A DNA stretch of 64,000 nucleotides from Anaeramoeba ignava BMAN. Its lineage: Eukaryota > Protista > Anaeramoebae. The notes below the pieces were generated by a model. That model had not been told where the DNA came from. It saw only the letters and a program-made list of their open reading frames with translations, and did no database searches. Where the stretch lies: contig JAPDFW010000144.1 in assembly GCA_028826165.1 (NCBI GenBank), positions 47,001 to 111,000 of the forward strand, given 5' to 3'. This document shows, piece after piece, positions 6,001-37,702 of the stretch. The stretch's first letter is position 1, and each line of letters opens with the position of its first letter. The translations under genes and the position numbers were made by a program.

Positions 6001-7680
6001 GAAATTCTCCACTTTAATTTCCAAGACGAAAAACACAATCGTTTGTGGAATTTTATGAGAACAAAATATAAGCATATCATTTTGGAAGTGATTCAAAATA
6101 GCATTTGCAGATCAAGATTCCATCATTTTGGAAGAGAAAGTTATAAGAGCCATCTCACAAAAAAACACTCATCAGAACCACCAATAGAGCAAACAGGACC
6201 ACGAGTTTTGGTCAACTCTATGGGACTATTCCGCTCATTTTGCATCAACAATCTCGACAAGAATCAATTCGCAATTGCAAGTACAAAAGGACTTCTTGAT
6301 ATTTCGATTGGAGACTCAGAAAATGAAAGATTTTTCCAACTTTATCACGAATATTTGGAACATGAATCCCTAACAAATCCTTCATCTTTCCATTTTTCTC
6401 AATGCGACTCTTCTCGAATCCCTAATTTGCATTCCCAATTAGATCTCAGGCCAAAACATCAATCTCAATATCAACACAAAAATAAAGAACAACAGAAACA
6501 AAACGATTTGGTTTCACCTACAAAAAAGAAAATTAAGAAAAAATTCCGCAACAAAAAGAACCAACCCAAAATTGCCCATAATTTGGAGAATTTTGAGAAT
6601 TTGGAACAAAAAACCGTTTTGGACGCACATTTTTTCAATGAAAAATTAAGTTGTTTGGATCGACCAATGCGTTACAAACTTTTGATTGATCTACCTAACT
6701 TGAAAATTCCCGAAAAACTAATTTCTGGACCTGTTTATAAATTTACAAAAAGTAGATTTTTAGTGGATGATCGAAGCCAATATTTGACGCAAAAGAAGCG
6801 CAAGATATACTCGTTGGTTTCAAGAGCAAAGCCGTGGAACTCTGCCAATTTCACGCTTGAGTCACACCATTCGAGTTGGGTTGAATCTCATCCAAAATCA
6901 CCCTTTTATATTTCATCAGGATTAAATGGAAGATTATTTTTTTTCGAATTCCAGAAAAAAATGCCACTTTATGAAATACAAAAACAGACGAACAAAAAAA
7001 TTCTCAAGGTGAATTTCACGCCTGATGGAAGACAATTTGGGGTTTCTGATGTTTCTGGGTTTGTGCGTTTGTGGAATTGCGACCACAAACAAAACGAACC
7101 GTTTCAACCTTTTTACAGTCTTGAATGTCATCTAAAAAGAGCGAATGATTTTTTGTTCATCAATTCAGGAAGTGTGATTGCAACTGTTGGCAAAACAGAT
7201 TCAAACACAGAAAACATCTCTTTATGGGATACACTTATGCCACCTATGAATAACCGAATTGCAAAATTTGACGTTTTAAATGATGGAAGTGCTTCATCAC
7301 TTGCGTTTTCCAAAAAATACAATCTTCTTATTTGCGGAGGAAAAAAAGGAAGTCTTCATGTTTTTGATCTTCGGAAATCACAGTTGCTTTTTTCTTCCAA
7401 ACGCAATCATAAAACAACTATCAAAACAATTGCGATTAATCATGATGAATCAGTTGTTTTTACTGGCGCAACTGATGGGTCAATAAACGCTTATGATTTG
7501 CCTTCTTTTAAACTTTTGGAGCAATTTAAAAGTGAGCATTCAAAAAGACTTCGTTTTAGAGATAAAGTTTCAACAAAAACAGTTGCTGCTTATGGTGTTA
7601 CTAGGATTATATCTTCTGGTGATGAAATTATTTCTTCTGGTGCTGATGGCAAAATTATTGCAAGACATTTCCAAAATTGA
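59..7680 (+). CDS. DMXL: Rabconnectin-3 alpha / DmX-like / Rav1 WD40 scaffold (V-ATPase assembly); 5'-partial, intron 375-470, apparent frameshift near 1850
   Basis: GTAACC..TTTAG intron joins ORF 65-409 to NFIYLRHPAK..QWR..NLLTSCADGLLRIWTE, in frame with ORF 644. Rav1p_C-like core (W.NVRTLGCGYW, DPEDCALFYLAMRK, FQEERWKSATLKNIYKLLG) and C-terminal WD40 repeats (HLKRANDFLF, ISLWDTLMPP). Confidence 0.85.
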
Positions 7681-21027: not shown

Positions 21028-22836
21028 ATGAATGAAATTATATTTTTTGGTGAAAATGAATTTTTAAAACTTATCAAAAATAAACCAAATAAAATAACAA
21101 AACCAATTCAATTTAAATTTGAAAATGAAAATGAAAATGAAAATGAAAATGAAAAACAAATTAAACAAATTTCATCAGGTTATTTTTCAACAATTTTCCT
21201 TTTTAAAAATGGAAAAGCAATAGAATATTTAACTGAAAATGATTTAAATCAAAATCCTGAAAAAATCCAAATTGAAGAAAATATTCAAAAAGTAACTGTT
21301 GGTTGGCAAAATGAAGCTATTTTAACAAAAGAAGGAAATGTATTTGCAAAAGGAAGTTATATCGACCCAAAAAATCCAAATGAATTTATCAATATTTCAT
21401 CATTAATTGAAGATAAAAATGATAGAATAATTGAAGATATTGTTTGTGGTTGGTGTTCAATTTACTTATTAACTTCAAATCAAAATGCTTATGGAATTGG
21501 TTCAAATGAATCTAGTCAAATTGGTATTAAAATACCGAAATATGTTAAAAAACCAATTTTAATGATGAAAAATGTTTCTAAAATATTTTCAGGAAATGCT
21601 TCAATTTTTGTTTTTCTTTTAAATTCAAATCAACAATTATTTGGTTGTGGCCAATTTGATTTAGGAAAAGATGAAATAAAATTCAATAAATTAACCAAAA
21701 TACAAAATATTCCAAAAGGCAAAATAATTGATATTCAGTCTGGATATTTCCATTCAATAATGTTGATTGAAGATGAAAATCAAAAAAGAAAACTTTATTC
21801 ATGTGGAGATTATGAATATAATGGACTTGATAAAAAATTTGGACAAAGTACAAAAGAATTTACTGAAATTAAATCATCTTTATTTGAAAATGATGATAAT
21901 ATTCTTGAAATTTCTGTTGGGCACAACCATACTTTGATTTTAACTTCCAAAGGGAAAATAATTTCATTTGGAAATAATGATTTTGGTCAATTAGGAACTG
22001 GAGATACAGAATATCAATCAATTCCAATTCAAATTGAACTTCCTAAATTAAGATTTAATGAAGATATTTCCAATTATCATATTTCTTGTGGTGCTTACAA
22101 ATCATTTCTTTATTATTCTCCTCTTTCTTTTTCCAATCTTGAAGAAGATTTGATAAAACTATTTGAAAGAAAAGAATTTTGTAATATTTCATTTAAAACC
22201 AAAAATGGAGAAGTAATTGAAGCTCATAAATTAATATTAAAATATAGATTAAATCAAAATGAAAATCAAATTGAAAAACTTCAAGAAATTATTTCAAAAA
22301 AATCAATTAAAGAATCAAATCAAATATTTGAAATGATTTATTCAAACAGAATAATAAATCCAATATTATATTCTGAAATTAAAGAAATTATAAATTCAAA
22401 TGAAAAAATAGAAGAAACAATTAAAAGAATTTATTTAAATGAAAATGAAAATGATTTTATAATTGAAAGAAAAGAAAAACAATATAAATTTCCAAAATTA
22501 ATATTAATAATGAGAAGTGAATTATATCGAGGAATGTTTTTATCTGTAACTGAAGATAAATCTAATAAAGTTACAGATTATAGTGAATTAAGTAATAAAT
22601 CATTTCAAATATTTGAATATTGGATTTATTCAAATCAAATTAAAGAAGGAATTCAAATTACACAAGAAATAATTGATGAAATTCAAACAGGAATTGATTA
22701 TTTTCAATTAAATCAAACAAATCCAAATTTATTTGATTTATTAATTAACAAATTTAATAATCAAAATCAAAATCAAATTAATAATCAAAATCAAAATGAA
22801 AACAAAAAAGAAAAAGAAAATTGTTTAATTTTTTAA
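21028..22836 (+). CDS. RCC1-repeat + BTB/POZ protein with C-terminal CaaX motif (CLIF)
   Basis: VGHNHTLIL..FGNNDFGQLGTG RCC1 blades; FCNISF..IEAHKLIL and a second BTB-like segment (FPKLILIMRSELYRGMF). Confidence 0.85.
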   Translation: MNEIIFFGENEFLKLIKNKPNKITKPIQFKFENENENENENEKQIKQISSGYFSTIFLFKNGKAIEYLTENDLNQNPEKIQIEENIQKVTVGWQNEAILTKEGNVFAKGSYIDPKNPNEFINISSLIEDKNDRIIEDIVCGWCSIYLLTSNQNAYGIGSNESSQIGIKIPKYVKKPILMMKNVSKIFSGNASIFVFLLNSNQQLFGCGQFDLGKDEIKFNKLTKIQNIPKGKIIDIQSGYFHSIMLIEDENQKRKLYSCGDYEYNGLDKKFGQSTKEFTEIKSSLFENDDNILEISVGHNHTLILTSKGKIISFGNNDFGQLGTGDTEYQSIPIQIELPKLRFNEDISNYHISCGAYKSFLYYSPLSFSNLEEDLIKLFERKEFCNISFKTKNGEVIEAHKLILKYRLNQNENQIEKLQEIISKKSIKESNQIFEMIYSNRIINPILYSEIKEIINSNEKIEETIKRIYLNENENDFIIERKEKQYKFPKLILIMRSELYRGMFLSVTEDKSNKVTDYSELSNKSFQIFEYWIYSNQIKEGIQITQEIIDEIQTGIDYFQLNQTNPNLFDLLINKFNNQNQNQINNQNQNENKKEKENCLIF

Positions 22837-23010
22837 ACAAGAAATGAAAATTAAAATTAATAATCAAAATCAAAATGAAAAAGAAAAAGAAAAAGAAAAT
22901 TGTTTAATTTTTTAAACAAATGAAAAATCCAAAAAAATTAAAAAAAAAATTTTTTTTCTTTTTTCATTTTGATTTATTTTTTTTTAACCATCTTTTCAAA
23001 CACATAAATT

Positions 23011-26000
23011 ATGAAGTTGATTAACTTTTCTTTTTTAATTTATTTTTTGGCAATTCTCTTTCTTATTTACAGTAAAAAAAATCAAATCAAAAAAAAACGT
23101 TATTAAGAAAAATTTAATTGAGAAATTATGTTTTTCTTTCTTTTTAGAAACAAATTGTGCTGAACTTCCTTTACCAACAAATTACGAAGAAATTGAAAGT
23201 AATAATACATATTATTTTGTACCAGGAAATACTTATTCTAATTATTCTACTGTTAATGAACAGGAAAATGTAAAAAGAAATTGATTCGTAACTTTTACTT
23301 AGATTAACTTTTTTTTTCAAAATTTTTTAATTGAATTTTGAATAGATAAACATTACGTGCCAAGAACCTTTGAACGAACCAACAACATTTACGGGTTTAA
23401 TTCAAGTAAAAACAATTAAAAAATTACTCTTTGAAATATTTTTTTGTTTAAATTTATTGTTTTCTTTTTGGAATTTTGAATCGGAAAATATTCAAAATCA
23501 AATAGTTCAATCTAGTTAATAATACTCGAATTAATACTTCAAATTGTGGTTCAAATTTGACTTTCTCAGCTCAAGTTATTGTACATACATCAAACCCTGT
23601 GATTTTTGATCATGTGAATTTTAGTGGTAAAGCTCAAATTTCTTCCACCTCTTCATTTTGTTATTTGTATAATTGCGATATAAGTGGAGTGACTAGATCT
23701 GTAGAAGAAAAGTTTATTCTTTCACAAGATTCTTCTTTTCTGATTGAATCTTTGATTAGTTCAAATGATAATTCTTTTCAAAATTTTGATTTTAGCCTTA
23801 GTATTAACCCGCCCAAAAATATTACGATAAATAATTGTGATGGAAATTTTAATTTAATAGTTGATGGAATCTCAACTTATTTATCTGAATGTGTTCCTTT
23901 AGCGCTGACAATAAAGGATACAGATGTAACAATAACTAATGGCGATTTAAAAATGAAAAATTTAACTCTCTATGAAGACTCTTCGATTTTTGGAGATGTT
24001 TTAAATGTTAATGAATCAATTTCTATTTATGGAGATGCTTCCAATTCAAAAATTATTTCTGCTTCTCTTTATTTTAATGGAACAAATTTTTTTAGTGAAG
24101 ATACAAAAGTCGAGATTCAAAATAATTTTTCCATTTTTTCTTCATCTTGTAATTTTCAAACATCAGATCTATTTTTGATAGTGAATAATACAACTTTAGA
24201 AATCAATGATTCATTAACAATTAGAAGAATTGATTTTATTAATTCCGCTTCATTGCATGGTTCAGCAACTCTTCAAGTTTCAGATAATATTTTTTTCAAT
24301 TCATCAGACACTAAAACAATTGCTTCTCCTTTAAAGGTGTTAAATTTAAATAACAACGAAACCACTGATAATGGCTTGATTCATATTTATGATCAATTTT
24401 TCATCAGTACTTCTCTTCCCTCAGTTCATCTTCCATCTATTCTTTTTCAAAATTCTGAAGTAAATCTGGAACTATATTCCCAGAACGGAAGCACAAATTA
24501 TACAATGACAATCTTGCGAACTGATCGAGGAACTATTATTGGCAATAATACTAATTTTTTAGTTGTTACAAGCCAAACAACCTTCAATTCAGACTCAATA
24601 TTGAATAACATCACAATTGATTCACAAAACACAAAATTTACGGGAAATGGATCCATTGAGTTTCAAAATTCTGCTCAATTTTATACATCATTAGCAAATT
24701 CTGAACCAGGTTCTCTTTTTACTCTTTTTGGAAATGGATCCTTTATTCCAGATGAATTGATTATTAATGGTAGTTTATTTTTTGATGGTATTTTTCAAGG
24801 AAAAAATATCCAAATCACAGCAAATGGAAAATTAGAATTTTCAAATGTTGATTCCTCAGTTTTTAACAAAACAAATATTACATTAAATGGGTATTTAACG
24901 ATTCGAAATTCTATAATTTATGATCCTTTGACAAATTTCAGTTGTGATTCAGAAAATGAATATCCATTAAGCATAATAGATGCGAGTTTGATTTTTTTGG
25001 AAAATCAACCTTTCCTTCCTTCGATGAAAATGGAAAATTCAAACATAACTCATTTCAATTCAACTTTAAAGGGTCTTTTTCTTGAAGGATATAATATTCT
25101 TAATGCTTCTAATTTAACATTCCAAAATGGCCAAATTCAAGCAAAAGAAAATTCAGAATCATTTCTCGATTTTGTTTCCTTCTCAACTGTTTTTTTTGGT
25201 TCTTCTTCAGGATTTAATTTGAATTCAAATTCCATTCTCACAATTTTTTCTTCAGATAACTCAACACCTTATTTATTTTCTTCTTGGACAAACAATGTCT
25301 TCTGTTATATTGTCAATGATTCTTCACTTAAACTGCAAAACCTAAGTTTCGAAATGAATGCTAATTTTATTGTCGATTCAAGTAGTAATATTTTAGTAAA
25401 TCAATCTTTTTTCAAAATTAATAGCTCAAATGAAGATTTTATTGGAACACTGTATATTGTGGGGTTCTATTCAGAAGTTGAATTAGAAAGTTATTTTATT
25501 TTGAAAAATCTGAATATTTCACAAGGAAAATTCACATTCACTACCATCAGAGCAAACGAAACTGATTCTTCTTTGATTTTTGGAGATGGAACAAGCAATG
25601 AAGTAATTATTAACGAGAACACAATTGAGCAATCAATAATTCAATCACAAGGATACATTGAAATCAATAATAACACTATTATCCATAATATTAAATTCGA
25701 GATGAGGGATTCTTCTCATCTTGTTATCAAAACATTCAATATAACAGATACAAAAAGTTCATCCAAAATTGAAAATCAAGGATTAATTACAGTATTTCAA
25801 AACGAACCTTCACTAATTAATGAAAAAAAGCAAGGATATAACCTCAATGAAGAATTCGATGGAATCTTTTTTAATTTTTCTTTGGATAATCAACAAAACG
25901 GAACTCTCAATTTTTCTGACAATATTCAGTTCAATCAAGAGTTTTCTTGTTCAGGTCTTTTTGAATCAGCAAACAACATGAATTTTGAAAAAGGGTTAAT

Positions 26001-29000
26001 GCTATATGGAACAGGAAAAATTCAAGGGTTAAGAGATACTGGAATAAATATTTCTGTGAATGGAAATTTGAACATTTCTGAATCTACAACAATGGATCTT
26101 GTGAATATTTCTGTGAATGGAGAAATGAGAGTTTCAGGTCTTGAAGCTTCTAAAAATATTTCCAACTCATTAGTAACAGTAAAATCTTTTTTTTGCTACT
26201 CAAACGCTCATTTTGGGTTGTACAATTCTACTTTGAAAGTAGAGGAAGATTATTACTTCGAGGATTCCTGTTATCTCGTTTCAGATTCTTTTTCAATATC
26301 AGGGTTTCATAATTATGGAAATTTTTCGGTTGAATCAAAAAATAATATATCCTTTGATGCTAATTTTTACAATTATGGAAATTTTGTAGCATCTGCTTCT
26401 AATATTTTATTTCGAAAATTAGTAAGTTACGAAGGTTTTCAGCTCAATAATTCAACCTTGATTCTTTTACAAGATTCCGTTCTGAATAATAGTAATGCTG
26501 GAATAGGCTCTGATTTCATATATCTAACGAACTCATCATTTACAATTCAAAATGAATCAACATTGACTTTCTATGGAAATTATATTATTGAGAAAGGAAT
26601 GAAGATTGATGGGAATTTTGAAATCAGCGAAAATACAAATATGAATTTAAGAGTGGAATCTACTAATACTGAATTAAAAATTAACAAGCCACCAATATTT
26701 AACAATAATTTAACAGTCGAATTACTTCGAGATTCACAAAATACTCCAAGAACAGATCCATATAATGTTATCTATTTATTATCCCCCTTTAATTTTTCTT
26801 TAGAAAATCTGCAAACAAATGAGGATCAATCCACTAAATTTTCACAAAATGGAGATTGGGTTATTGGAAATGTCCAAGGATGTAGGAAAGGGAAATATAG
26901 TAACAGTTTTGATCAGCCATGTCAAAATTGTTCTGAAGGATGGTACAATGATGAAATTGGAGTATTTTCTTGCAAGAAGTGTCCAGTAGGACATTTTTCA
27001 GATAAGGAAGGACAAGAAGAGTGTGAAGGGTGTTCTCCAGGTTTATTTCAACCAAATGAAGGAGAAACTACGTGTTTGGAATGCGAAAAAGGGACTTATT
27101 CATCGGGATTTAATTCAACTATTTGCACACAATGCCCATTAGGACAATATAACTCTGAGAAAGGTTCTTCTGGCTGTTATATTTGTGAAGCAGGGAAATT
27201 TAGTCATAATCCAACAAGGTGTGAATCTTGTTGGCCAGGAGTATACAGCTCAAAAAACGCATCTTCGAAATGTGATAATTGCCCATTAGGAAAATATAAT
27301 ACACAACCAGAATCAACTTCATGTAGCCCTTGTGAAGTCAATACCTACCAAGACGAATCCGGACAAACATCATGTCATTTATGTCCAACAAATTCGGAAA
27401 CAAATATTTATGGAGCATCAAGTATTGATGATTGCCTCTGTTCAATAGGATATTATGGATTAGCAAGGGAGACATGCAAAATTTGTTCCAAAGGAAGTGT
27501 GTGTGATGATGTTGGGATTGTTAATCCTGCTGCAGAAGAAGGATATTGGCATTCAAGTTCTGATCCAACAACATTTCTTGAATGTTCGGTAAAAGAGGCT
27601 TGTCCAGGAGGTGGAACTGACAATTGCAACAAAGAACTTGGATACAGTGGTAGTTTATGTTCTGTTTGTTTGCAAGGATTTTATAAATTTGGGAACCAAT
27701 GCATGAAATGTCCTAATAATCAAAAAAATCGATTGGTTCTTGTTGGGATTTTTGTTATTCTTCTTTGTTTGTTTCTTTTCATTATTGCAAGAAAAGTCAA
27801 GAATTATTTCGCATCTTTTAGTATCACATTCTCTTTCTTTCAAATTCTGGCAGTTATTTCTGGACTTAAATTGAATTGGCCTGATTCTATTGGATCCACT
27901 TGGAGATCAATTTCTCTCTTCAATTTCAATATTGATTATCTTGCAGTTGAATGCAATCTCCAACTAACTTATACGCAAAAATGGGCACTTTGCATGGTTT
28001 TTCCTTTTATTCTTCTTCTTGTTTTGTTGGTTGTTTATTTTTTTGTTTTTCTTCATTCCAAAATTATTGGAAAATGCGGAGCAGGATTTATGAGGAAATT
28101 CCCAAGATTTTGTTCAAAACCAAGCAGACAAACAACAAATAAATATCTCTATGTGTTTTCATGGCTAAGATTCAAAATTAGCCAACTCTTCACACATGGA
28201 TTTAGCAAAGAGCAGAGGAAATCGCTTTACAACAACTTGATTAATTCTTACACAACAATTCTCTCTTTTATTTATTTATTTCTTTCTTACAAAGTTCTCC
28301 AAATATTTGATTGCAAAAAGCAATCCGAAGGAACATATACATTTGGAGGTGATTCATCTCTTTTCTGCTACGAGAAATGGTGGAAAGATATATTCCCATT
28401 CGCAATAGTGTTTTTGGTTCTCTACGTTGTTGGAATTCCTCTTATTCTCTCAATTCTTTTTTTTGTTTCTTCCAAAAAACTTGATGAGCAAAGTTTTGAT
28501 TTAAGATTTGGATTATTATGCACAAGATACACAAAAACTTGGTTTTTTTGGGAAATATTTGTGATGATTCGCAAATTATTGTTGACTATTGCTCAATTAT
28601 TTCTTTCATTTGATCCAATTATTCAATCAATTTTTTGTGTGGTTGTTCTTCTTTTTGCGCTTGTTTTACAAATTCAAGCAAAACCCTTTATTGCAGATCG
28701 GCATAACACACTTGAATTTGTGTTGATTTGTTTTTCGGAAATTATTCTTTTTTCAGGAATGGTTTTTGCTTCAAATGATTTCCAGCAAACAAGTGGAAAA
28801 GGAATTTTAGGAATATTTATTATTACGCTAATTTGGATTTCCTTTTCAACTCTGATTATTATGATTTTATTTGAGATTAGACACAGAGTAAGAGTCCATA
28901 AAGGAAAAGATATCGATGAAATTCAGCAATCAATTGATATTTCAAGTGGACAAACTATCCTGAAATTCTTAGCTTCAAAACCTTCCTTTTTTTTGATTTG

Positions 29001-29373
29001 GGATTGGTTTCTCGAAAGTTCAGAATATCAAAATAAAATTCAAAGAGAATTTTTTCAACAAATTAGAGATTATTATAATTCGAAAGAAATTGAAAAACAA
29101 AAATTGAAATTTGATACATTTTGGGAATCAATTTTAATTAAATGGAGAGATTCTTTTCATCTTATCATTAAATCTTGGTTCATTCAAGCTTCTTTAAAAG
29201 AAAAAATTCAATTTATAAATCTTTTATCTAAAATTCGATTTGAAGGACTTTTATACTGCAATTCAAATTACACAAAAAAAGATCAAAAGAAAACAAAAAC
29301 ACTTACAACCAAATATTTCAAACAAAATCAAGATCAAAAACAAAATCAAAATCAAAATCAAAATCAAAATTAA
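23011..29373 (+). CDS. Large surface receptor-like protein: signal peptide, beta-rich ectodomain, Cys-rich ephrin-receptor-like (GCC2/GCC3) repeats, multipass TM domain; introns 23072-23147, 23270-23345, 23406-23505
   Basis: Three GT-AG introns join MKLINFSFLIYFLAILFLIY in frame to the 1938-aa ORF. CxxCxxGxY repeats at ~26880-27720, then about 8-9 hydrophobic helices including RFGLL..Y...WFFWEIFVMIRKLLL and KPF...HNTLE. Confidence 0.8.
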
Positions 29374-29469
29374 AATTAAAATTAAAATTAAAATTAAAAT
29401 TAAAATTGAATTGTTTTTATTCTTGATTGAGTAAAAATGAGAATTTGAATTGAATTTCAAATTATTTTT

Positions 29470-30120
29470 TTATTTCTCTTTCTCTTTCTCATTCTCATTT
29501 GAAGAAAAAATAATTTTTTGAGTTTTTGAATCAACAACTTTTGAGAAATATTTAGGAGGAATAATTCCATCAATTCCTTCAGATAAAATAACTTCATTTT
29601 CACTTTGGAAAAACTGAATTCCATCTTCTAAAGCCTTTTCAAGATCAACAAAAATCATGATTTCAGAAGAAGTTCTCATTCCAGAAATAACTTGACCTTT
29701 TCCAGGTTCTTTTGGAGCAAAATGGATATGATTTCTTTTCATTTTGGAAAGTCCTTGATTTTTGATGATATTCCAATTTTTTCGATTTGTGCCATGAACA
29801 GCACATTGTGGTAAATTCTCTTTTGTGATCTTTGTGAGACTCAGATCTTTGACTTCAATTGTATGACCTTGAGTTGCTTTGATGATGTCATTTTGATTTT
29901 CATCTTTTGAAAGAAGAAATCTTTTTTTATCGTTGTTTTCAACTATTCTTTTTATATCTTCGAAAGTTATTCTTTTTAATGATCTATGTTCTAAAAGATC
30001 AGATACTAAAACAAATCCATCAGTTCGCATTTTAATCTTTTCTTTTTTAGCTCCATGTCTTAAAAGATAACTTAATGTCTTTGATATTTTTATATCTGGA
30101 TTTTGTTGTCTTCTTGACAT
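29470..30120 (-). CDS. TPT1: tRNA 2'-phosphotransferase (Tpt1/KptA)
   Basis: ISKTLSYLLRHGA, IVENNDKKRF, IKATQGHT, AVHGT, GLSKMKRNHIHFA, ISGMR, SENEVILSEG. ATG at 30120. Confidence 0.95.
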   Translation of the reverse strand: MSRRQQNPDIKISKTLSYLLRHGAKKEKIKMRTDGFVLVSDLLEHRSLKRITFEDIKRIVENNDKKRFLLSKDENQNDIIKATQGHTIEVKDLSLTKITKENLPQCAVHGTNRKNWNIIKNQGLSKMKRNHIHFAPKEPGKGQVISGMRTSSEIMIFVDLEKALEDGIQFFQSENEVILSEGIDGIIPPKYFSKVVDSKTQKIIFSSNENEKEKEK

Positions 30121-30188
30121 TTTAAAGAAAAAAAAAATGAAAAAATTAAAATTAAAATTCAATTTTTTTCATTTTTTTCTTTTTAAAA

Positions 30189-31994
30189 ATGAATGACGTT
30201 TTATTTTTTGGAAGAAATGAAAAACCAAAACTTATAAAAAATGAACCACATAAAATAACAAAACCAATTCAATTTAAATTTGAAAATGAAAATGAAAATG
30301 AAAATGAAAATGAAAATGAAAATGAAAATGAAAATGAAAATGAAAATGAAAATGAAAAACAAATTAAGCAAATTTCATCAGGAAATTTTTCAACAATTTT
30401 CCTTTTTGAAAATGGAAAAGCAATAGAATATTTAAATGAAAATGATTCAAAACAAAATCCTTCAAAAATCCAAATTGAAGAAAATATTCAAAAAGTAATT
30501 GTTGATGCTGATAATGAAGCTATTTTAACAAAAGAAGGAAATGTATTTGCCAAAGGATATGATATTAATCCAGAAAATCCAAAAGAATTTATCAATATTT
30601 CATCATTAATTGAAGATACAAATGATAGAATAATTGAAGATGTTGTTTCTGGATATTATTCAATTTATTTATTAACTTCAAATAAAAATGCTTATGGAAT
30701 TGGTTACAATATTAATGGCCAACTTGGTTTTGATTCTAAAACACTTGAAAAAACAGAAAAACCAATTTTAATGATGAAAAATGTTTCTAAAATATTTTCA
30801 GGAAATACTTCAAATCATGTTTTTCTTTTAAATTCAAATCAAGAATTATTTGTATGCGGATATAATCAATTTGGTCAACTTGGATTAGGAAAATCAATAA
30901 CAGAAATAAAGATCGATAAATTAACCAAAATCCAAAATATTCCAAAAGGCAAAATAATTGATATTCAATCTGGATTTTTTCATTCAATAATGTTGATTGA
31001 AGATGAAAATCCAAAAAGAAAACTTTATTCATGTGGATATTCTCATTATAATGGACTTGGTAAAGATGATGAAGATACTGATGAATTTACTGAAATCAAA
31101 TCATCTTTATTTGAAAATGATGATATTCTTGAAATTTCTGTTGGATACAATCATACTTTGATTTTAACAAATAATTCAACACTAATAGGATTTGGGCATA
31201 ATTATCTTAGCCAATTAGGAACTGAAGATATAAATGATCAATTAATTCCAATTCAAATTGAACTTCCTAAATTAAGATTTAATGAAAATATTTCTAATTA
31301 TCATATTTCTTGTGGAGATGAAAAATCATTTCTTTATTATTCTCCTCCTTCTTTTTCCAATCTTGAAGAAGATTTGATAAAATTATTTAGAAGAAAAGAA
31401 TTTTGTAATATTTCATTTAAAACAGAAAATGGAGAAATAATTGAAGCTCATAAATTAATATTGAAATATAGATTAAAAGATCAAAATCAAATTGAAAAAC
31501 TTCAAGAAATTATTTCAAATAAATCAATTAAAGAATCAAATCAAATATTTGAAATGATTTATTCAAATAATTCCAAAATAAATCCAAAATTATATTCTGA
31601 AATTAAAGAAATTATAAATTCCAATGAAAAAATTGAAGAAACAATTAAAAGAATTTATTTAAATGAAAATGAAAAAGATTTTACAATTGAAAGAAAAGAA
31701 AAACAATATAAATTCCCAAAATTAATATTAATAATGAGAAGTGAATTATATCGAGGAATGTTTTTATCTGTAACAAATGATACTTCTAATAAAGTTACAG
31801 ATTATAGTGAATTAAGTAATAAATCATTTCAAATATTTGAATATTGGATTTATTCAAATCAAATTAAAGATGAAATTCAAATTACACAAGAAATAATTAA
31901 TGAAATAGAAATTGGAATTGATTATTTTCAATTAAATCAAACAAATCCAAATTTATTGGATTTATTAATTAAAAAATTTAATAATCAAAATTAA
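30189..31994 (+). CDS. RCC1-repeat + BTB/POZ protein (array copy A)
   Basis: Close paralog of 21028-22836; intronless. Confidence 0.85.
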   Translation: MNDVLFFGRNEKPKLIKNEPHKITKPIQFKFENENENENENENENENENENENENEKQIKQISSGNFSTIFLFENGKAIEYLNENDSKQNPSKIQIEENIQKVIVDADNEAILTKEGNVFAKGYDINPENPKEFINISSLIEDTNDRIIEDVVSGYYSIYLLTSNKNAYGIGYNINGQLGFDSKTLEKTEKPILMMKNVSKIFSGNTSNHVFLLNSNQELFVCGYNQFGQLGLGKSITEIKIDKLTKIQNIPKGKIIDIQSGFFHSIMLIEDENPKRKLYSCGYSHYNGLGKDDEDTDEFTEIKSSLFENDDILEISVGYNHTLILTNNSTLIGFGHNYLSQLGTEDINDQLIPIQIELPKLRFNENISNYHISCGDEKSFLYYSPPSFSNLEEDLIKLFRRKEFCNISFKTENGEIIEAHKLILKYRLKDQNQIEKLQEIISNKSIKESNQIFEMIYSNNSKINPKLYSEIKEIINSNEKIEETIKRIYLNENEKDFTIERKEKQYKFPKLILIMRSELYRGMFLSVTNDTSNKVTDYSELSNKSFQIFEYWIYSNQIKDEIQITQEIINEIEIGIDYFQLNQTNPNLLDLLIKKFNNQN

Positions 31995-32098
31995 AATTAA
32001 AATCAAAATTAAAATTAAAATTAAAATTAAAATTAAAATTAAAATTAAAATTAAAATTAAAATTCCAAAAATTATTTTTCATTTTTTTCTTTTTAAAA

Positions 32099-33841
32099 AT
32101 GAATGAAATTTTATTTTTTGGAAGAAATGAAAAACCAAAACTTATCAAAAATGAACCAGATAAAATAACAAAACCAATTCAATTTAAATTTGAAAATGAA
32201 AATGAAAATGAAAATGAAAAACAAATTAAACAAATTTCAACAAGTTTATTTTCAACAATTTTCCTTTTTGAAAATGGAAAAGCAATAGAATATTTAAGAT
32301 ATTCATATCAAAATCCTAAAGAAATCCAAATTGAAAATATTCAAAAAGTAATTGTTGATGCTGATAATAAAGCTATTTTAACAAAAGAAGGAAATATATT
32401 TGCCAAAGGAAAAGATATTAATCCAAAAAATCCAAATAAATTTATCAATATTTCATCATTAATTGAAGATACAAATGATAGAATAATTGAAGATATTGTT
32501 TCTGGATCTCGTTCAATTTACTTATTAACTTCAAATCATAATGCTTATGGAATTGGTTCAAATTATAATGGCCAACTTGGTTTTGATTCTTATTCGGTTG
32601 AAAAAACAGAAAAACCAATTTTAATGATGAAAAATGTTTCTAAAATATTTTCAGGAAATACTTCAAATCATGTTTTTCTTTTAAATTCAAATCAAGAATT
32701 ATTTGTATGCGGAATTCATGCATATGGTCAACTTGGATTAAGATCCCTAGCAATAGAAGATGAAATCCATGAATTAACCAAAATCCAAAATATTCCAAAA
32801 GGTAAAATAATTGATATTCAATGTGGAAGTTATCATTCAATAATGTTGATTGAAAATGAAAATCAAAAAAGAAAACTTTATTCATGTGGAGATTATGGAC
32901 ATAATGGACTTGGCAAAGATGAAAACACTTATCAATTTACTGAAATCAAATCATCTTTATTTGAAAATGATAATATTATTGATTTTTCTGTTGGATTTGA
33001 TCATACTTTGATTTTAACAACTAAAGAGAAATTAATAGGATTTGGGCATAATTATCATGGTCAATTAGGAACTGGAGATAGAGAATATCAAAAAATTCCA
33101 ATTCAAATTGAACTTCCTAAATTAAGATTTAATGAAGATATTTCTAATTATCATATTTCTTGTGGAGATGAAAAATCATTTCTTTATTATTCTCCTCCTT
33201 TTTCCAATCTTGAAGAAGATTTGATAAAATTATTTAGAAGAAAAGAATTTTGTAATATTTCATTTAAAACCGAAAATGGAGAAATAATTGAAGCTCATAA
33301 ATTAATATTGAAATATAGATTAAAAGATCAAAATCAATTTGAAAAACTTCAAGAAATTATTTCAAATAAATCAATTAAAGAATCAAATCAAATATTTGAA
33401 ATGATTTATTCAAATAATTCCAAAATAAATCCAAAATTATATTATGAAATTAAAGAAATTATAAATTCAAATGAAAAAATTGAAGAAACAATGAAAAGAA
33501 TTTATTTAAATGAAAATGAAAAAGATTTTATAATTGAAAGAAAAGAAAAACAGTATAAATTTCCTAAATTAATATTAATAATGAGAAGTGAATTATATCG
33601 AGGAATGTTTTTATCTGTAACAGAAGATAAATCAAATAAAGTTACAGATTATAGTGAATTAAGTAATAAATCATTTCAAATATTTGAATATTGGATTTAT
33701 TCAAATCAAATTAAAGATGAAATTCAAATTACACAAGAAATAATTAATGAAATAGAAATTGGAATTGATTATTTTCAATTAAATCAAACAAATCCAAATT
33801 TATTGGATTTATTAATTAAAAAATTTAATAATCAAAATTAA
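32099..33841 (+). CDS. RCC1-repeat + BTB/POZ protein (array copy B)
   Basis: Tandem paralog; BTB half nearly identical to copy A. Confidence 0.85.
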   Translation: MNEILFFGRNEKPKLIKNEPDKITKPIQFKFENENENENEKQIKQISTSLFSTIFLFENGKAIEYLRYSYQNPKEIQIENIQKVIVDADNKAILTKEGNIFAKGKDINPKNPNKFINISSLIEDTNDRIIEDIVSGSRSIYLLTSNHNAYGIGSNYNGQLGFDSYSVEKTEKPILMMKNVSKIFSGNTSNHVFLLNSNQELFVCGIHAYGQLGLRSLAIEDEIHELTKIQNIPKGKIIDIQCGSYHSIMLIENENQKRKLYSCGDYGHNGLGKDENTYQFTEIKSSLFENDNIIDFSVGFDHTLILTTKEKLIGFGHNYHGQLGTGDREYQKIPIQIELPKLRFNEDISNYHISCGDEKSFLYYSPPFSNLEEDLIKLFRRKEFCNISFKTENGEIIEAHKLILKYRLKDQNQFEKLQEIISNKSIKESNQIFEMIYSNNSKINPKLYYEIKEIINSNEKIEETMKRIYLNENEKDFIIERKEKQYKFPKLILIMRSELYRGMFLSVTEDKSNKVTDYSELSNKSFQIFEYWIYSNQIKDEIQITQEIINEIEIGIDYFQLNQTNPNLLDLLIKKFNNQN

Positions 33842-33959
33842 AATTAAAATTTAAAATTAAAATTAAAATTAAAATTAAAATCAAAATTAAAATTAAAATT
33901 AAAATTAAAATTAAAATTAAAATTAAAAATTTCATTTTTCCATTTTTTTCTTTTTAAAA

Positions 33960-35624
33960 ATGAATGAAATTTTATTTTTTGGAAGAAATGAAAAACCAAA
34001 ACTTTTCAAAAATGAACCAGATAAAATAACAAAACCAATTCAATTTAAATTTGAAAATGAAAATGAAAATGAAAATGAAAAACAAATTAAACAAATTTCA
34101 TCAGGAAATTTTTCAACAATTTTCCTTTTTAAAAATGGAAAAGCAATAGAATATTTAAATGAAAATGATTCAAAACAAAATCCTAAAGAAATCCAAATTG
34201 AAAATATTCAAAAAGTAATTGTTGATGCTGATAATGTAGCTATTTTAACAAAAGAAGGAAATGTATTTGCCAAAGGAAAAGATATTAATCCAAAAAATCC
34301 AAATAAATTTATCAATATTTCATCATTAATTGAAGATACAAATGATAGAATAATTGAAGATATTGTTTCTGGATCTCGTTCAATTTATTTATTAACTTCA
34401 AATAAAAATGCTTATGGAATTGGTTCAAATTATAATTGCCAACTTGGTTTTGATTCTAAAACACTTGAAAAAACAGAAAAACCAATTTTAATGATGAAAA
34501 ATGTTTCTAAAATATTTTCAGGAAATACTTCAAATCATGTTTTTCTTTTAAATTCAAATCAAGAATTATTTGGATGTGGTGATAACAGTTCTGGTCAACT
34601 TGGATTAGGAAAATCAATAACAGAAATAAAGATCGATAAATTAACCAAAATCCAAAATATTCCAAAAGGTAAAATAATTGATATTCAATCTGGATTTTTT
34701 CATTCAATAATGTTGATTGAAGATGAAAATCCAAAAAGAAAACTTTATTCATGTGGATATTCTCATTATAATGGACTTGGTAAAGATGATGAAAATACTT
34801 ATGAATTTACTGAAATCAAATTATCTTTATTTGAAAATGATAATATTATTGATTTTTCTGTTGGATTTGATCATACTTTGATTTTAACAACTAAAGAGAA
34901 ATTAATAGGATTTGGGCATAATTATCATGGTCAATTAGGAACTGGAGATAGAGAATATCAAAAAATTCCAATTCAAATTGAACTTCCTAAATTAAGATTT
35001 AATGAAGATATTTTCAATTATCATATTTCTTGTGGAGATGAAAAATCATTTCTTTATTATTCTCCTCTTTCTTTTTCCAATCTTGAAGAAGATTTGATAA
35101 AACTATTTAGAAGAAAAGAATTTTGTAATATTTCATTTAAAACAGAAAATGGAGAAATAATTGAAGCTCATAAATTAATATTGAAATATAGATTAAAAGA
35201 TCAAAATCAAATTGAAAAACTTCAAGAAATTATTTCAAATAAATCAATTAAAGAATCAAATCAAATATTTGAAATGATTTATTCAAATAATTCCAAAATA
35301 AATCCAAAATTATATTTTGAAATTAAAGAAATTATAAATTCAAATGAAAAAATTGAAGAAACAATGAAAAGAATTTATTTAAATGAAAATGAAAAAGATT
35401 TTATAATTGAAAGAAAAGAAAAACAGTATAAATTTCCTAAATTAATATTAATAATGAGAAGTGAATTATATCGAGGAATGTTTTTATCTGTAACAGAAGA
35501 TAAATCAAATAAAGTTACAGATTATAGTGAATTAAGTAATAAATCATTTCAAATATTTGAATATTGGATTTATTCAAATCAAATTAAAAATTTATTGAAA
35601 ATTCAAATTAAAATTGAAAATTAA
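33960..35624 (+). CDS. RCC1-repeat + BTB/POZ protein (array copy C; mosaic of A and B, C-terminally truncated)
   Basis: Homology ends after YSNQIK at ~35588, where an AAAATT-type repeat begins. Confidence 0.8.
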   Translation: MNEILFFGRNEKPKLFKNEPDKITKPIQFKFENENENENEKQIKQISSGNFSTIFLFKNGKAIEYLNENDSKQNPKEIQIENIQKVIVDADNVAILTKEGNVFAKGKDINPKNPNKFINISSLIEDTNDRIIEDIVSGSRSIYLLTSNKNAYGIGSNYNCQLGFDSKTLEKTEKPILMMKNVSKIFSGNTSNHVFLLNSNQELFGCGDNSSGQLGLGKSITEIKIDKLTKIQNIPKGKIIDIQSGFFHSIMLIEDENPKRKLYSCGYSHYNGLGKDDENTYEFTEIKLSLFENDNIIDFSVGFDHTLILTTKEKLIGFGHNYHGQLGTGDREYQKIPIQIELPKLRFNEDIFNYHISCGDEKSFLYYSPLSFSNLEEDLIKLFRRKEFCNISFKTENGEIIEAHKLILKYRLKDQNQIEKLQEIISNKSIKESNQIFEMIYSNNSKINPKLYFEIKEIINSNEKIEETMKRIYLNENEKDFIIERKEKQYKFPKLILIMRSELYRGMFLSVTEDKSNKVTDYSELSNKSFQIFEYWIYSNQIKNLLKIQIKIEN

Positions 35625-35884
35625 AAATTAAATTAAAATTAAAAAATTTAATAATTAAAATTAAAATTAAAATTAAAAATTAAAATTAAAATTAAAATTA
35701 AAATTAAAATTCAAATTAAAATTAAAATCAAAATTAAAATTAAAATTAAAATTAAAATTAAAATTAAAATTAAAATCAAAATTAAAATTAAAATTAAAAT
35801 TAAAATTAAAAATAAAAATTAAAATTTCATTTTTTCATTTTTCATTTTTCATTTTTCATTTTTCATTTTTTTTTTCTCTTCAAA

Positions 35885-37702
35885 ATGGAACACAAAAAAA
35901 ATGAATTTTTCTTTTTTGGAAGAAAAACATTTGAAGGATTAAAACCAGAAACAAGAAAAGAAGAAAAAGAAGAAGAAGAACTAATAATGAAGCCAACAGA
36001 AATCAAGCCATTAAAGAATCACAACGATCCAATAACGCAAGTAGCACCAGGATACACATCAATAACATTTCTAACGCAAAAGGGACAAGCATTTGAATAC
36101 ACACAAGAATCAGAAGATTACAAAGAAATTGAAGTTTTCGATGAAGAACAAGCAAAAAAAGGACCGCAAATCATCAAGAAAATCAGCGCAGGCTTGTACA
36201 TTCAGGCCGTTTTAACTACAGAAGGACATGCTTTTGGAAAAGGAAAAGACGTTAATAAAAATTCTGACGTTTTTTTTCCGTTAAAAATTTCGGACTCAAA
36301 AGAAAATATTTTTATCGACGTTGTTTGTGGTGAAAAAGCAATTTACTTGCTCAGCCAAAAGGGAAATGCTTATGGAATAGGCTCAAATACTCACGGGCAA
36401 CTTGGATTTGAACCGCCAAGAAAATCAGAGAGTTTGAACTTGCTTAAAAGAAACATTGAGAGGATTTTCTCTGGAATTTGCTCGAATTCCGTGTTTCTTA
36501 TCACTAGATCCAACATGGTTTTTGTTTGCGGAGACAACTTTTATGGTCAACTTGGACTGGAAAAAAATAACTTATCCAAAAATCATGAATTACGAGAAAT
36601 CGAAGAACTTCCAAAAAGGAAAATTATTGACATCAAGCTCGGAAATTACCACACTCTCATGCTTGTTGAAGACGACAATAATCCTCCGCCTATTAGTATC
36701 ATGGGTGTAAACCCCCTGAATCCGCGCACGCTTTACTCATGCGGAAGAGCAGGTTATAACGGGATTAGCGAAAAAGACGATATTTCGCAATTTACGGAAG
36801 TAAAATCAAGTTTATTTAAAGATGATAATATTCTTGAAATTTCAGTTGGAATGAACCACTCATTGATTTTAACAGCAAACGGAAAAATGATTGGATTCGG
36901 CTGCAACGAAGATGCCCAATTAGGCACTGGAAACACAGATTTTCATCCGACTCCTTTCGAAATAAAACTTCCTGATTTGTTTTTCGATATCGATAATTAT
37001 CACATTACTTGCGGCGATTTCAACTCGTTTCTCTATTACTCTTTCTTCTCAAGTATTCTGTTCGATCTTCTCCAACTTTTCGAAAAAAAGGAACTTTGTG
37101 ACATCACTTTCCAGACAAAAGGTGAAAATATTTCCGCCCATCGATTTATCCTCAATTACAGAATAGGCACAGAAGATCAAATCGATGAATTTCGAGAATA
37201 CATTTCACAAAAATCATCCAATGAAGCAAACGAAATTTTTCAACTTATCTATGGCAACTACCAAATCGATAAAAATCTTCGAGAAGAGTTCCAATTTGAT
37301 TTTAATTTGAATGAATCAATGATAGATACTTTGTCAGAAATGAATTTTTCTCAACAAGATCGTGATTTTGAAATTGTTAGAATTAAAAAAGAAATCAAAA
37401 AAGAAATCAAAAAAACAACTTTCCATAAAATCATTTTGTTTGCAAGAAGTAAATTTTTCAATAAAAAATTCCAAGAAGATGCAAATATGGAAAAATATGA
37501 TGAATTCAATGATTTTACTGATGAATCTTTTGACATTTTTCAAAACTGGATTTACACAAACAATTTAAGGTCAGATATTGTCATTACAAAAACGATTCTT
37601 CAAGATTTACAAGCAATAATGACTGGTTATGGATTGAATCAAACAATTCCAAATATTGTTTCCCAAGCAACCGAATTATTCAACAGGCAAAAAATGAATT
37701 AA
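35885..37702 (+). CDS. Divergent RCC1-repeat + BTB protein
   Basis: Same architecture (GSNTHGQLG, GDNFYGQLG, VGMNHSLIL, LCDITF..ISAHRFIL, FHKIILFARSKFF) with visibly higher GC. Confidence 0.85.
   Translation: MEHKKNEFFFFGRKTFEGLKPETRKEEKEEEELIMKPTEIKPLKNHNDPITQVAPGYTSITFLTQKGQAFEYTQESEDYKEIEVFDEEQAKKGPQIIKKISAGLYIQAVLTTEGHAFGKGKDVNKNSDVFFPLKISDSKENIFIDVVCGEKAIYLLSQKGNAYGIGSNTHGQLGFEPPRKSESLNLLKRNIERIFSGICSNSVFLITRSNMVFVCGDNFYGQLGLEKNNLSKNHELREIEELPKRKIIDIKLGNYHTLMLVEDDNNPPPISIMGVNPLNPRTLYSCGRAGYNGISEKDDISQFTEVKSSLFKDDNILEISVGMNHSLILTANGKMIGFGCNEDAQLGTGNTDFHPTPFEIKLPDLFFDIDNYHITCGDFNSFLYYSFFSSILFDLLQLFEKKELCDITFQTKGENISAHRFILNYRIGTEDQIDEFREYISQKSSNEANEIFQLIYGNYQIDKNLREEFQFDFNLNESMIDTLSEMNFSQQDRDFEIVRIKKEIKKEIKKTTFHKIILFARSKFFNKKFQEDANMEKYDEFNDFTDESFDIFQNWIYTNNLRSDIVITKTILQDLQAIMTGYGLNQTIPNIVSQATELFNRQKMN

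Follow-up and report, generated by a model that had tools for sequence, protein, structure and literature searches.

In nematodes and plants, the MATH-BTB and F-box families are expanded and positively selected ubiquitin-ligase adaptors that have been proposed to act against foreign proteins. For F-box adaptors, such a role has been proposed in C. elegans (PMC8120010). Among proteins combining an RCC1-like propeller with BTB domains, IBTK is a CRL3 substrate receptor (PMC4447969) and RCBTB1 has been implicated in ubiquitination (PMC4974088). The HNWD genes of Podospora anserina (het-d/het-e) encode a WD40 beta-propeller in which a few interaction-face positions per repeat are hypervariable under diversifying selection, with the repeats shuffled and homogenized by concerted evolution (PMC1805685, PMC2873952). 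Massive expansions of BTB and F-box proteins are also found in the amoeba-associated Chlamydiae (PMC4209131).

We analyzed a 64,000-nucleotide stretch of the Anaeramoeba ignava BMAN genome (contig JAPDFW010000144.1, positions 47,001 to 111,000; hereafter the window) and found genes of a family that resembles each of these systems in part. Like IBTK, which also has two BTBs, and RCBTB1/RCBTB2, its proteins consist of an RCC1-like propeller followed by BTB domains. Those are single or few-copy conserved genes, however, whereas the A. ignava family has more than 1,000 copies and a hypervariable face; furthermore, IBTK contains ankyrin repeats, while Pfam detected no ankyrin domain in the window proteins. 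The MATH-BTB and F-box families share with it the lineage-specific expansion and the pairing of a constant ligase-docking domain with a fast-evolving substrate-binding domain, both roles being putative here. In contrast to them, it belongs to a metamonad protist, varies in an RCC1 propeller, has more members, takes up a much greater share of a small genome and confines its variation to about 35 defined sites of a chassis that is otherwise almost the same in every copy. As in HNWD, a putative propeller interaction face varies, probably under diversifying selection and alongside concerted evolution, but the Podospora diversity lies between the repeats and alleles of about 10 NLR-type genes, whereas A. 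ignava has around 1,000 separate genes with an RCC1 fold, a BTB-BTB partner and neither a NACHT nor a death domain. The chlamydial case is similar in that ubiquitination-adaptor families are hugely expanded in an amoeba–bacterium setting; there, however, the proteins are bacterial effectors aimed at the host and the variable domains are different, whereas the A. ignava genes belong to the host nucleus. Among solved structures, the best sequence match is UVR8, a single conserved UV-B photoreceptor of plants without a BTB, and this likeness only shows which face varies.

The window holds four close genes encoding an RCC1 propeller and tandem BTBs (g1 to g4) and a fifth, divergent one (g5). The features, in window coordinates, are as follows:

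21028-22836, + strand: g1, RCC1 propeller and BTB-BTB gene, 602 aa (ORF, Pfam, alignment)
21120-21155: (Glu-Asn)n microsatellite of g1
30189-31994, + strand: g2, the reference copy, 601 aa (ORF, Pfam, AF2)
30189-31349, + strand: propeller of g2, residues 1-387
30281-30358, + strand: in-frame (TGAAAA)13, the (Glu-Asn)n microsatellite of g2 (TRF, alignment, AF2)
31359-31604, + strand: BTB1 of g2, residues ~391-472
31680-31988, + strand: BTB2 of g2, residues ~498-600
31974-32064, no strand: (AAAATT)15 satellite, the g2-g3 spacer (TRF, flank comparison)
32099-33841, + strand: g3, RCC1-BTB-BTB gene, 580 aa, tandem neighbor (ORF, Pfam, alignment)
32191-32220: (Glu-Asn)n microsatellite of g3
33821-33928, no strand: (AAAATT)18 satellite, the g3-g4 spacer (TRF, flank comparison)
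33960-35624, + strand: g4, RCC1-BTB-BTB gene, 554 aa (ORF, Pfam, alignment)
34052-34081: (Glu-Asn)n microsatellite of g4
35598-35826, no strand: (AAAATT)37 satellite, overrunning the 3' end of g4 (TRF)
35885-37702, + strand: g5, divergent fifth paralog, 605 aa (ORF, Pfam, alignment)

The four paralogs had been proposed in a sequence-only reading of positions 21028-35624. Their reading frames, all intact, intronless and on the forward strand, are confirmed, with Pfam matches to RCC1/RCC1_2/WD40_RLD and BTB in each. PF00415 and PF13540 scored above their cut-offs in 5/5 window proteins and PF25390 did so in g2; PF00651 likewise exceeded its threshold, matching two stretches of the C-terminal half in both g2 and g5. 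All the motif variants quoted in that reading (SGYF/SGNF/TSLF, VGWQNE/VDADNE, CGWCS/SGYYS/SGSRS and the others) sit in equivalent alignment columns, and the C-terminal BTB halves, described as near-invariant, are indeed almost identical. The gene g1 stands away from the array and has a 5-residue deletion in the GxNxxGQ loop of blade 4; g4 is C-terminally truncated, its last ~45 codons being replaced by the downstream satellite. A conserved T-rich motif follows the (AAAATT)15 satellite directly before the ATG of g3 (flank comparison). Beyond the range covered by the earlier reading, g5 shows 43-45% identity and a higher GC, with an RCC1-BTB-BTB architecture like the others. Its interpretation as a conserved orthologue common to other species was unsupported, as no closer relative was found.

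In the AF2 model (pLDDT 87, most of the propeller mainly >90), the chassis consists of an RCC1-like propeller with seven blades and, behind it, two BTBs of the same chain packed in the manner of a BTB dimer. A shallow alignment had left the BTB half at pLDDT <50, and a more diverse one was used instead. The propeller superposes on RCC1 (VIA-align Z 41.2 for Prp20 and 40.2 for human RCC1, with a Foldseek E of 1e-24), while residues 390-599 superpose on the tethered Miz1-BCL6 POZ dimer (4u2m_A; Z 15.0, 190 residues aligned) and BTB2 matches the KBTBD4 BTB. The BTB part had been called degenerate. This was wrong: it folds confidently as two BTB domains and evolves with an omega of 0.145.

Genome-wide, two independent nucleotide signatures matched at 1,389 and 1,153 places and their reversed controls at 0, and we estimate the family at ~1,150-1,390 RCC1-BTB copies and ~6% of the 42.8-Mb genome. 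The four paralogs, real as they are, thus represent a far larger set. There are 765 annotated family proteins, the reading frame is open over the full length in ~90% of the scored copies, and fragments, truncated copies and fragment gene models are numerous in the hypervariable family. A. ignava encodes ~1,000 or more predicted cytosolic proteins on one constant chassis. The expansion is large and lineage specific: among the matches listed, A. flamelloides has distant homologs only, and beyond the family itself the closest relatives are further A. ignava paralogs, together with an A. flamelloides cluster of 29-32% identity. None of the 353 matches listed was a transcript-derived protein of the hypervariable family; transcript-derived sequence was present for two divergent paralogs. 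One annotated member, P0091, is a fusion with a Ras-family domain.

Among 67 paralogs, 35 codons hold nearly all of the variation. These hypervariable (HV) positions show an entropy of 2-3.7 bits and 9-16 different residues and are flanked by invariant neighbors. All 67 HV haplotypes are unique, and copies differ at a median of 29/35 HV positions, compared with 12% elsewhere. As the 67 paralogs are hypervariable at the same positions and an independent set of 162 other proteins recovers 35/35 of them, the motif pattern is not due to chance. In g2, the HV codons are:

codons 1-18 of 35: residues 9, 11, 12, 21, 66, 107, 108, 124, 156, 157, 175, 176, 187, 207, 209, 225, 227, 228
codons 19-35 of 35: residues 240, 241, 243, 263, 264, 284-286, 294, 320, 321, 337, 339, 350, 352, 377, 378

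The HV sites comprise two residues of the GxxH turn of each blade and positions around or downstream of each GxNxxGQ loop. Thirteen lie in the strand 1–strand 2 turns, 22 in the strand 3–strand 4 loops and none in the two alternate loop classes, a restriction to two same-face loops per blade that is highly significant (Fisher p = 2.6e-9). The clustering of variable sites on one propeller face thus held for all 35, the mapping being based on strand topology and UVR8 homology and not on measured coordinates or distances. The GxxH and Gx positions align with W233/W285/W337, R286/R338 and W94/W198/W250/W302 of UVR8, the Trp/Arg of GWRHT and the Trp of GW, all of them residues of the interface between the two UVR8 subunits of the dimer (PMC7455749). 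By this alignment, the HV face is predicted to be the one that UVR8 uses for protein contacts. The remark that many variable residues are aromatic also holds, the 35 sites consisting of 18.5% Tyr, 6.5% Phe, 2.5% His and 1.7% Trp. In comparison with the scaffold, Tyr is enriched 6-fold, Trp 17-fold and Arg 3-fold; in comparison with an AT-neutral expectation, Ile is tenfold depleted (1.9% vs. 19.6%) and Asp is in excess (8% vs. 1.6%). Mutual information between the HV sites is ~0.

We estimated omega with partitioned GY94 ML codon fits and counting methods and, for the opposite-face loops, from the likelihood profile. The estimates were 0.145 for the BTBs, 0.31 for the RCC1 framework and ~0.2 for the opposite-face loops; with omega at 0.15-0.35, purifying selection acts on strands, opposite-face loops and BTBs alike. 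Total dS was 8.1 for the BTBs and 7.5 for the framework, and this equality between the two halves rules out BTB invariance through gene conversion alone. At the HV sites, dN was 43-49, the nonsynonymous rate being 5.5-9 times the synonymous rate of the same genes. The excess was seen in 23/23 sister pairs, in which pN at HV sites (pooled 0.42) was greater than 2.5 times pS at non-HV sites (pooled 0.073). Within the sites, omega was 1.41-1.56 (2dlnL 6.7) for positions picked by variability (entropy), a circular choice, and 1.21 for HV sites defined a priori by motif, not significantly above 1 (2dlnL ~1). The within-codon omega (1.2-1.6) is marginal because the HV sites are saturated. The site-wise dN/dS proposed as a check in the sequence-only reading therefore gives a divided answer, clear against the dS of the gene but marginal within the sites. 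The dS tree length was 5.3 for strands, 14.7 for the non-HV codons of HV loops and ~30 for HV codons, synonymous rates being elevated both at the HV codons and nearby.

Recombination among the copies is evident. The gene g4 is mosaic, its blocks resembling g2 in some parts and g3 in others (17 runs vs. 59 expected; 0/10000 shuffles), the family tree is star-like with 85% of its length in terminal branches, and satellites and a promoter motif flank 49-53/57 copies. The tandem, satellite-flanked copies would owe their uniform scaffold to unequal crossing-over and gene conversion, and birth-and-death together with concerted evolution is the probable mode. Around the HV patches, the framework sequences of the copies hardly differ even in their nucleotides.

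The reading of the family as diversified binders is supported. In full, and with a probability of roughly 0.5, we propose a germline repertoire on a constant chassis, in which the variable propeller face would be a ligand-binding surface kept diverse by selection and the BTB module would pass the propeller-bound protein to a shared effector, for which the analogy with IBTK, RCBTB1 and RhoBTB makes a Cullin-3 ubiquitin ligase the most likely candidate. Given the repertoire size and the uniqueness of the copies, the likeliest ligands would be fast-evolving or foreign proteins (those of prey or symbiont bacteria, viruses or mobile elements). An immune-like repertoire had been suggested already from the four genes, and part of that reading is supported, namely the constant scaffold with hypervariable loops on one face, the fast nonsynonymous change and, at genome scale, a very large lineage-specific family.

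The Cullin-3 and immune reading of the family is plausible but unproven. The join of a BTB to a separate candidate substrate-binding domain is as in CRL3 receptors, cullin genes are present (PF00888 matches at ~8 A. ignava loci), and the BTB2 helix-loop, which falls where Cul3 is bound in BTB adaptors, is strongly conserved even in paralogs of 33-38% identity. At the position of phi-x-E in the alpha3-beta4 loop, which we take to be the Cul3-contact motif, BTB2 mostly has V-T-E, but g2 has V-T-N and divergent paralogs carry V-Q-D or V-N-D. BTB2 aligns only weakly with the BTB of SPOP (E 0.8), and the AF2 model has no 3-box or BACK helices after the BTB, the chain ending at the last core BTB2 helix (H589-600 of 601). 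Some Cul3 binders likewise lack a 3-box. The missing 3-box and imperfect phi-x-E would nevertheless suit a binder repertoire in which the BTB pair is purely a structural or oligomerization module, the propellers serving as sequestering binders or as GEF-like regulators of, for example, the small-GTPase and trafficking machinery that is greatly expanded in Anaeramoeba. We consider this unlikely, though the tandem BTBs resemble a closed intramolecular pseudo-dimer, RCC1-like domains often partner with GTPases (the matches include RCC1, RPGR and HERC), the Ras-family domain of P0091 would fit, and the Rab and TBC families of Anaeramoeba are expanded (PMC11550330). The conserved helix-loop of BTB2 argues against it, other proteins with RCC1 and BTB are CRL3 receptors, and no plausible set of endogenous GTPases would come near the number of ~1,000 unique surfaces.

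Alternatively, one propeller face may have lost its constraint, with concerted evolution homogenizing the rest and no adaptive diversification. The within-site omega near 1, the demonstrable gene conversion and the near-zero mutual information, as expected of saturated neutral sites, all agree with this, but conversion tracts should then homogenize isolated islands of 1-2 codons as well, unless their diversity is selected. The HV nonsynonymous divergence of 5.5-9 times the same-gene synonymous level, even in sister pairs, speaks against it too, and surface loops that are simply unconstrained are ruled out by the opposite-face omega of ~0.2 together with an HV composition far from the AT-driven neutral expectation; we regard this explanation as improbable. 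The rise of dS toward the HV codons and the near-identical nucleotides around the HV patches, which would suit template switching, could instead mean that the hypervariability arises mainly from a process that targets mutations or copies them from templates, such as local hypermutation or conversion in very short tracts with many donors, in place of selection on point mutations. However, raised dS beside selected sites is equally expected from long-kept diversity, as at MHC loci, the composition bias would still need selection, and we know of no eukaryotic germline mechanism that targets two codons per repeat, which makes such a process very improbable. Least probable is a selfish or functionless amplification, in which a satellite-flanked unit, largely unexpressed and decaying, was spread by unequal recombination: the satellite flanks, the many truncated copies and fragment gene models and the lack of transcript-derived HV-family sequences among the matches listed fit it, but the full-length frame is intact in ~90% of the scored copies, and purifying selection has acted strongly on the scaffold and BTBs (omega 0.15-0.35) across a total dS of 7-8.

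If the reading as a selected repertoire is correct, a free-living anaerobic protist gives over to one family of designer-like binding proteins ~6% of its genome and, as roughly estimated from locus-tag numbers, at least several percent of its genes. The repertoire would be among the largest and cleanest with a constant scaffold and variable loops outside animal adaptive immunity, and would extend the idea of innate defense by ubiquitin-ligase adaptors from nematodes and plants to metamonads. It would also provide a tractable case of concerted evolution and diversifying selection coexisting within single genes, and protein engineering would gain a natural library of ~1,000 RCC1-propeller binders with defined variable positions. 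Finally, it would bear on how a bacteria-eating, symbiont-housing amoeba tells partners from prey. In a bolder form, which we consider unlikely, the family would be a germline counterpart of antibodies or VLRs, independently invented with a beta-propeller as its base: a set of intracellular receptors, more than 1,000 in number, against bacterial, viral or mobile-element proteins, coupled by the BTB pseudo-dimer to a cullin ligase, reshuffled by satellite-mediated crossing-over and conversion and perhaps expressed sparsely or conditionally.

Neither BTB nor RCC1 is mentioned in the text of the Nat Commun genome paper or the A. pumila preprint, and in the supplements searched RCC1-type PANTHER names occur only in a lateral-transfer table for A. 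flamelloides. The public annotation of the family is piecemeal and its names are misleading ("claret," "BTK-binding," "kelch repeat and BTB"), with many members named "BTK-binding protein-related." The (Glu-Asn)n microsatellite differs in length between the copies, and the stretch sits in a disordered loop of the AF2 model (pLDDT <50).

Anaeramoeba ignava is a free-living, anaerobic metamonad amoeba that lives with sulfate-reducing symbionts (PMC11550330), and its extremely AT-rich assembly comprises 42.8 Mb in 147 contigs. Within the window, we found five genes (g1–g5) combining an RCC1 propeller with BTB domains, as well as two long ORFs that show no relationship to each other:

1900–7680: long ORF, RAVE/Rav1p_C and WD40 protein of ~1,930 aa
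21028–22836, + strand: g1, intronless ORF
23557–29373: long ORF, Ephrin-receptor-like/ELAPOR-like cysteine-rich membrane protein of ~1,930 aa, unrelated and lying between g1 and the array
30189–31994, + strand: g2, intronless ORF
32099–33841, + strand: g3, intronless ORF
33960–35624, + strand: g4, intronless ORF
35885–37702, + strand: g5, intronless ORF, absent from the list of the sequence-only reading

RCC1 repeats and BTB were identified by Pfam in all five proteins, and a Pfam-based domain check placed two BTB stretches in the C-terminal half of both g2 and g5. In an alignment of the five proteins, g1–g4 were mutually 81–90% identical, and g5 was 43–45% identical to them. The motif variants quoted in the sequence-only reading were all present at equivalent columns of this alignment, and the C-terminal halves, described there as near-constant, were nearly identical. 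The GC-richer, divergent g5 stands at the array end and was without a close paralog or orthologue in the searches made: its best non-self matches, all from A. ignava, were 39–46% identical. It may be an older relative that lacks the family's hypervariability.

To describe the variation, we took full-length copies from 70 fetched loci and from the window, which yielded 67 distinct paralogs. Amino-acid entropy reached at least 2 bits at 35 codons (hereafter HV, numbered on the 601-aa g2; 7–16 residues, effective number 7.5), while nearly all remaining columns were invariant or close to it. Every paralog carried a unique combination of the 35 residues (67/67), and pairs differed at a median of 29 of the 35 HV positions versus 12% elsewhere. 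A second, independent sample, made up of 162 annotated proteins, yielded all 35 sites again. In every blade, the core HV sites comprise the xx pair in the GxxH/S turn and each x of the GxNxxGQ loop; the non-core sites lie slightly farther along the latter loop. The family has a scaffold-and-variable-face design.

The AF2 model built from a diverse alignment was of good quality (pLDDT 87.4, pTM 0.78; propeller mostly >90), and its propeller matched the seven-bladed RCC1 fold (VIA-align Z: Prp20 41, RCC1 40; Foldseek E = 1e-24). In RCC1, the turn corresponding to the HV GxxH turn presumably carries residues that contact Ran. The strand prediction puts 13 HV sites in strand1–strand2 turns and 22 in strand3–strand4 loops or their edges. 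Successive strand connections of an antiparallel propeller blade alternate between the faces, and because of this alternation all 35 sites are placed on one face. The sequence-only reading had proposed structure mapping to tell clustered from scattered variation: 35 of 35 sites lay in same-face loops of the predicted fold and none in the strand2–strand3 or strand4–strand1' loops (Fisher p = 2.6e-9). Independently, UVR8 was the best sequence match among solved structures. The W and R of the UVR8 GWRHT motifs are aligned to the variable "xx" of GxxH, and W302 and its equivalents to the x immediately following G in GxNxxGQ. The UVR8 dimer interface is built by these GWRHT W/R and W302-type residues, with a neighboring Trp ring buried (PMC7455749). 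Predicted strand topology and UVR8 homology together assign the HV sites to a single propeller face. Separately, an in-frame (TGAAAA)n microsatellite, which encodes (Glu-Asn)n of 5–13 units and differs in length from copy to copy, lies in a disordered loop that links the first strand to the second:

21120–21155: (TGAAAA)n in g1
30281–30358: (TGAAAA)n in g2
32191–32220: (TGAAAA)n in g3
34052–34081: (TGAAAA)n in g4

We fitted codon models by ML to partitions of the 67 sequences (GY94+F3x4, fixed tree), and the HV codons contrasted with the rest of the gene in evolutionary rate.

ML estimates of omega by partition
BTB half, 209 codons: 0.145
RCC1 framework, 334 codons: 0.31
Strands, 154 codons: 0.35
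Opposite-face loops, 74 codons: about 0.2 (omega = 1 worse by ~74 lnL)
HV codons, 35 codons: 1.41–1.56

Tree-length dS was 8.1 for the BTB half and 7.5 for the framework, and the invariance of the BTB half therefore reflects purifying selection and not gene conversion alone. At the HV codons, the ML tree-length dN of 43–49 was 5.5–6 times the gene's dS, and counting over all pairs gave a dN(HV)/dS(non-HV) of 8.9. Pooled over 23 independent sister pairs, pS(non-HV) was 0.073, pN(non-HV) 0.049 and pN(HV) 0.42, with pN(HV) exceeding 2.5 times pS(non-HV) in all 23. With the AT-rich composition of this genome, Nei–Gojobori counting inflates omega ~2.5-fold (0.79 for the framework, vs. 0.31 by ML).

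The dN/dS check suggested by the sequence-only reading had a marginal outcome. Omega exceeded unity for the HV codons (2dlnL = 6.7 against omega = 1), sites whose choice by variability is circular; when 34 sites were defined by motif instead, omega was 1.21 and not significantly above 1 (2dlnL about 1). The within-site test is weak because the 35 HV codons hold ~7 effective synonymous sites, and these are saturated. Furthermore, dS climbed from 5.3 in the strands to 14.7 in the non-HV codons of the same loops and ~30 in the HV codons. This rise fits old loop segments having been kept while the scaffold was homogenized, and it also fits a locally elevated mutation rate. Selection is favored because the HV composition departs from both the scaffold and the AT-neutral expectation: Tyr made up 18.5% (6 times the scaffold level), Trp, Arg and Asp were enriched 17-, 3- and 2.5-fold, Ile, Leu, Gly and Pro were depleted relative to the scaffold, and Ile stood at 1.9% vs. 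19.6% expected under AT neutrality. Diversifying selection is the best-supported cause of the HV variation, short of proof by a clean site test.

The family is large. A six-frame genome search with g2, in which 73 of 3,123 candidates were scored, recovered among these ~70 full-length copies of 81–90% identity, ~90% of them open. With g5 as the query, a largely distinct set of ~70 loci was found. A 27-nt signature from BTB2 occurred 1,389 times in the genome with at most two mismatches, and a 26-nt propeller signature 1,153 times; the reversed controls gave 0 in both cases. As each copy spans ~1.9 kb, these counts correspond to ~6% of the genome. Copies are arrayed in tandem on the same strand, at most six or seven in a row and one every ~2 kb, and such arrays are spread over many contigs. 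A protein word search retrieved 765 annotated members and >100 clusters of fragment-length gene models, and a sizeable minority of the copies is therefore truncated. Many short "kelch repeat and BTB" models of 120–160 aa on other contigs (P0394, P0397, P0420 and ~100 other clusters) consist of the BTB2 part only, some of these clusters having 19–44 member sequences; they point to many truncated or split copies.

Several patterns bear on exchange among copies. In g4, g2-like and g3-like blocks alternate in 17 runs vs. 59 expected (0 of 10,000 shuffles), and the tree of the 67 paralogs is star-like, with terminal branches making up 85% of its length. For HV sites separated by more than three codons, mutual information is about zero, which fits shuffling and saturation equally. 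The copies share a common unit, 5' to 3', of an (AAAATT)n satellite, a T-rich motif (immediately 5' of the ATG in 53 of 57 copies), the CDS and (AAAATY)n (within 80 nt 3' of the stop in 49 of 57). The hexamer satellite, found likewise at the flanks of 30 fetched paralog loci (L001–L030), lies in the window at:

31974–32064: (AAAATT)n
33821–33928: (AAAATT)n
35598–35826: (AAAATT)n

This satellite is a possible driver of unequal crossing-over and of the family's spread. The g4 copy has had its last ~45 codons replaced by the satellite, the frame passing from "...SNQIK" directly into (AAAATT)37 (35540–35830). The 27-nt BTB2 stretch (g2, ~31700–31730) is identical in 66 of the 67 copies, synonymous sites included, and has ~1,390 genomic occurrences; this is nucleotide conservation beyond what protein constraint requires.

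Both BTB1 (g2 residues ~391–472) and BTB2 (~498–600) were folded in the good AF2 model. Residues 390–599 of g2 (31356–31985) superposed on the single-chain Miz1–BCL6 POZ heterodimer (4u2m_A; Z 15.0 over 190 residues), and the two BTBs therefore apparently form an intramolecular pseudo-dimer; the model suggests such pairing within one chain rather than the usual homodimer. BTB2 matched the KBTBD4 BTB profile (E = 2e-5), and its helix-loop segment is kept even in paralogs of 33–38% identity. The phi-x-E position is variable, V-T-E in most copies, and no 3-box was found after BTB2 in the AF2 model, the chain terminating with the core BTB. The genome has approximately eight cullin loci. From the architecture and the Cul3-ligase precedents for RCC1 plus BTB, IBTK (PMC4447969) and RCBTB1 (PMC4974088), we infer that the module may dock onto Cul3. 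Coupling of the family to Cul3 and an immune-like role, as put forward in the sequence-only reading, would be reasonable. Conceptual precedents are the Podospora HNWD WD40 repertoire (PMC1805685) and the expanded adaptors of the F-box (PMC8120010) and MATH-BTB families.

Our literature search found no paper linking Anaeramoeba with BTB or RCC1. A transcript-derived (EukProt) source was listed for 0 of 240 full-length and 0 of 113 fragment-length HV-family matches and was present for two divergent paralogs, a hint at either low or conditional expression or near-identical paralogs defeating transcriptome assembly. Proteins of ~560 aa with the same architecture and 29–37% identity were, apart from a single A. 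flamelloides cluster, further A. ignava paralogs (50%-clustered library), and an ESM Atlas search found RCC1+BTB clusters in other lineages, e.g., oomycetes. Among annotated A. ignava models on other contigs are putative fusions, which may instead be merged gene models: the longer members P0195 and P0197 have N-terminal extensions annotated as "aardvark," and P0091 joins RCC1-BTB-BTB to a Ras-family GTPase domain (Pfam).
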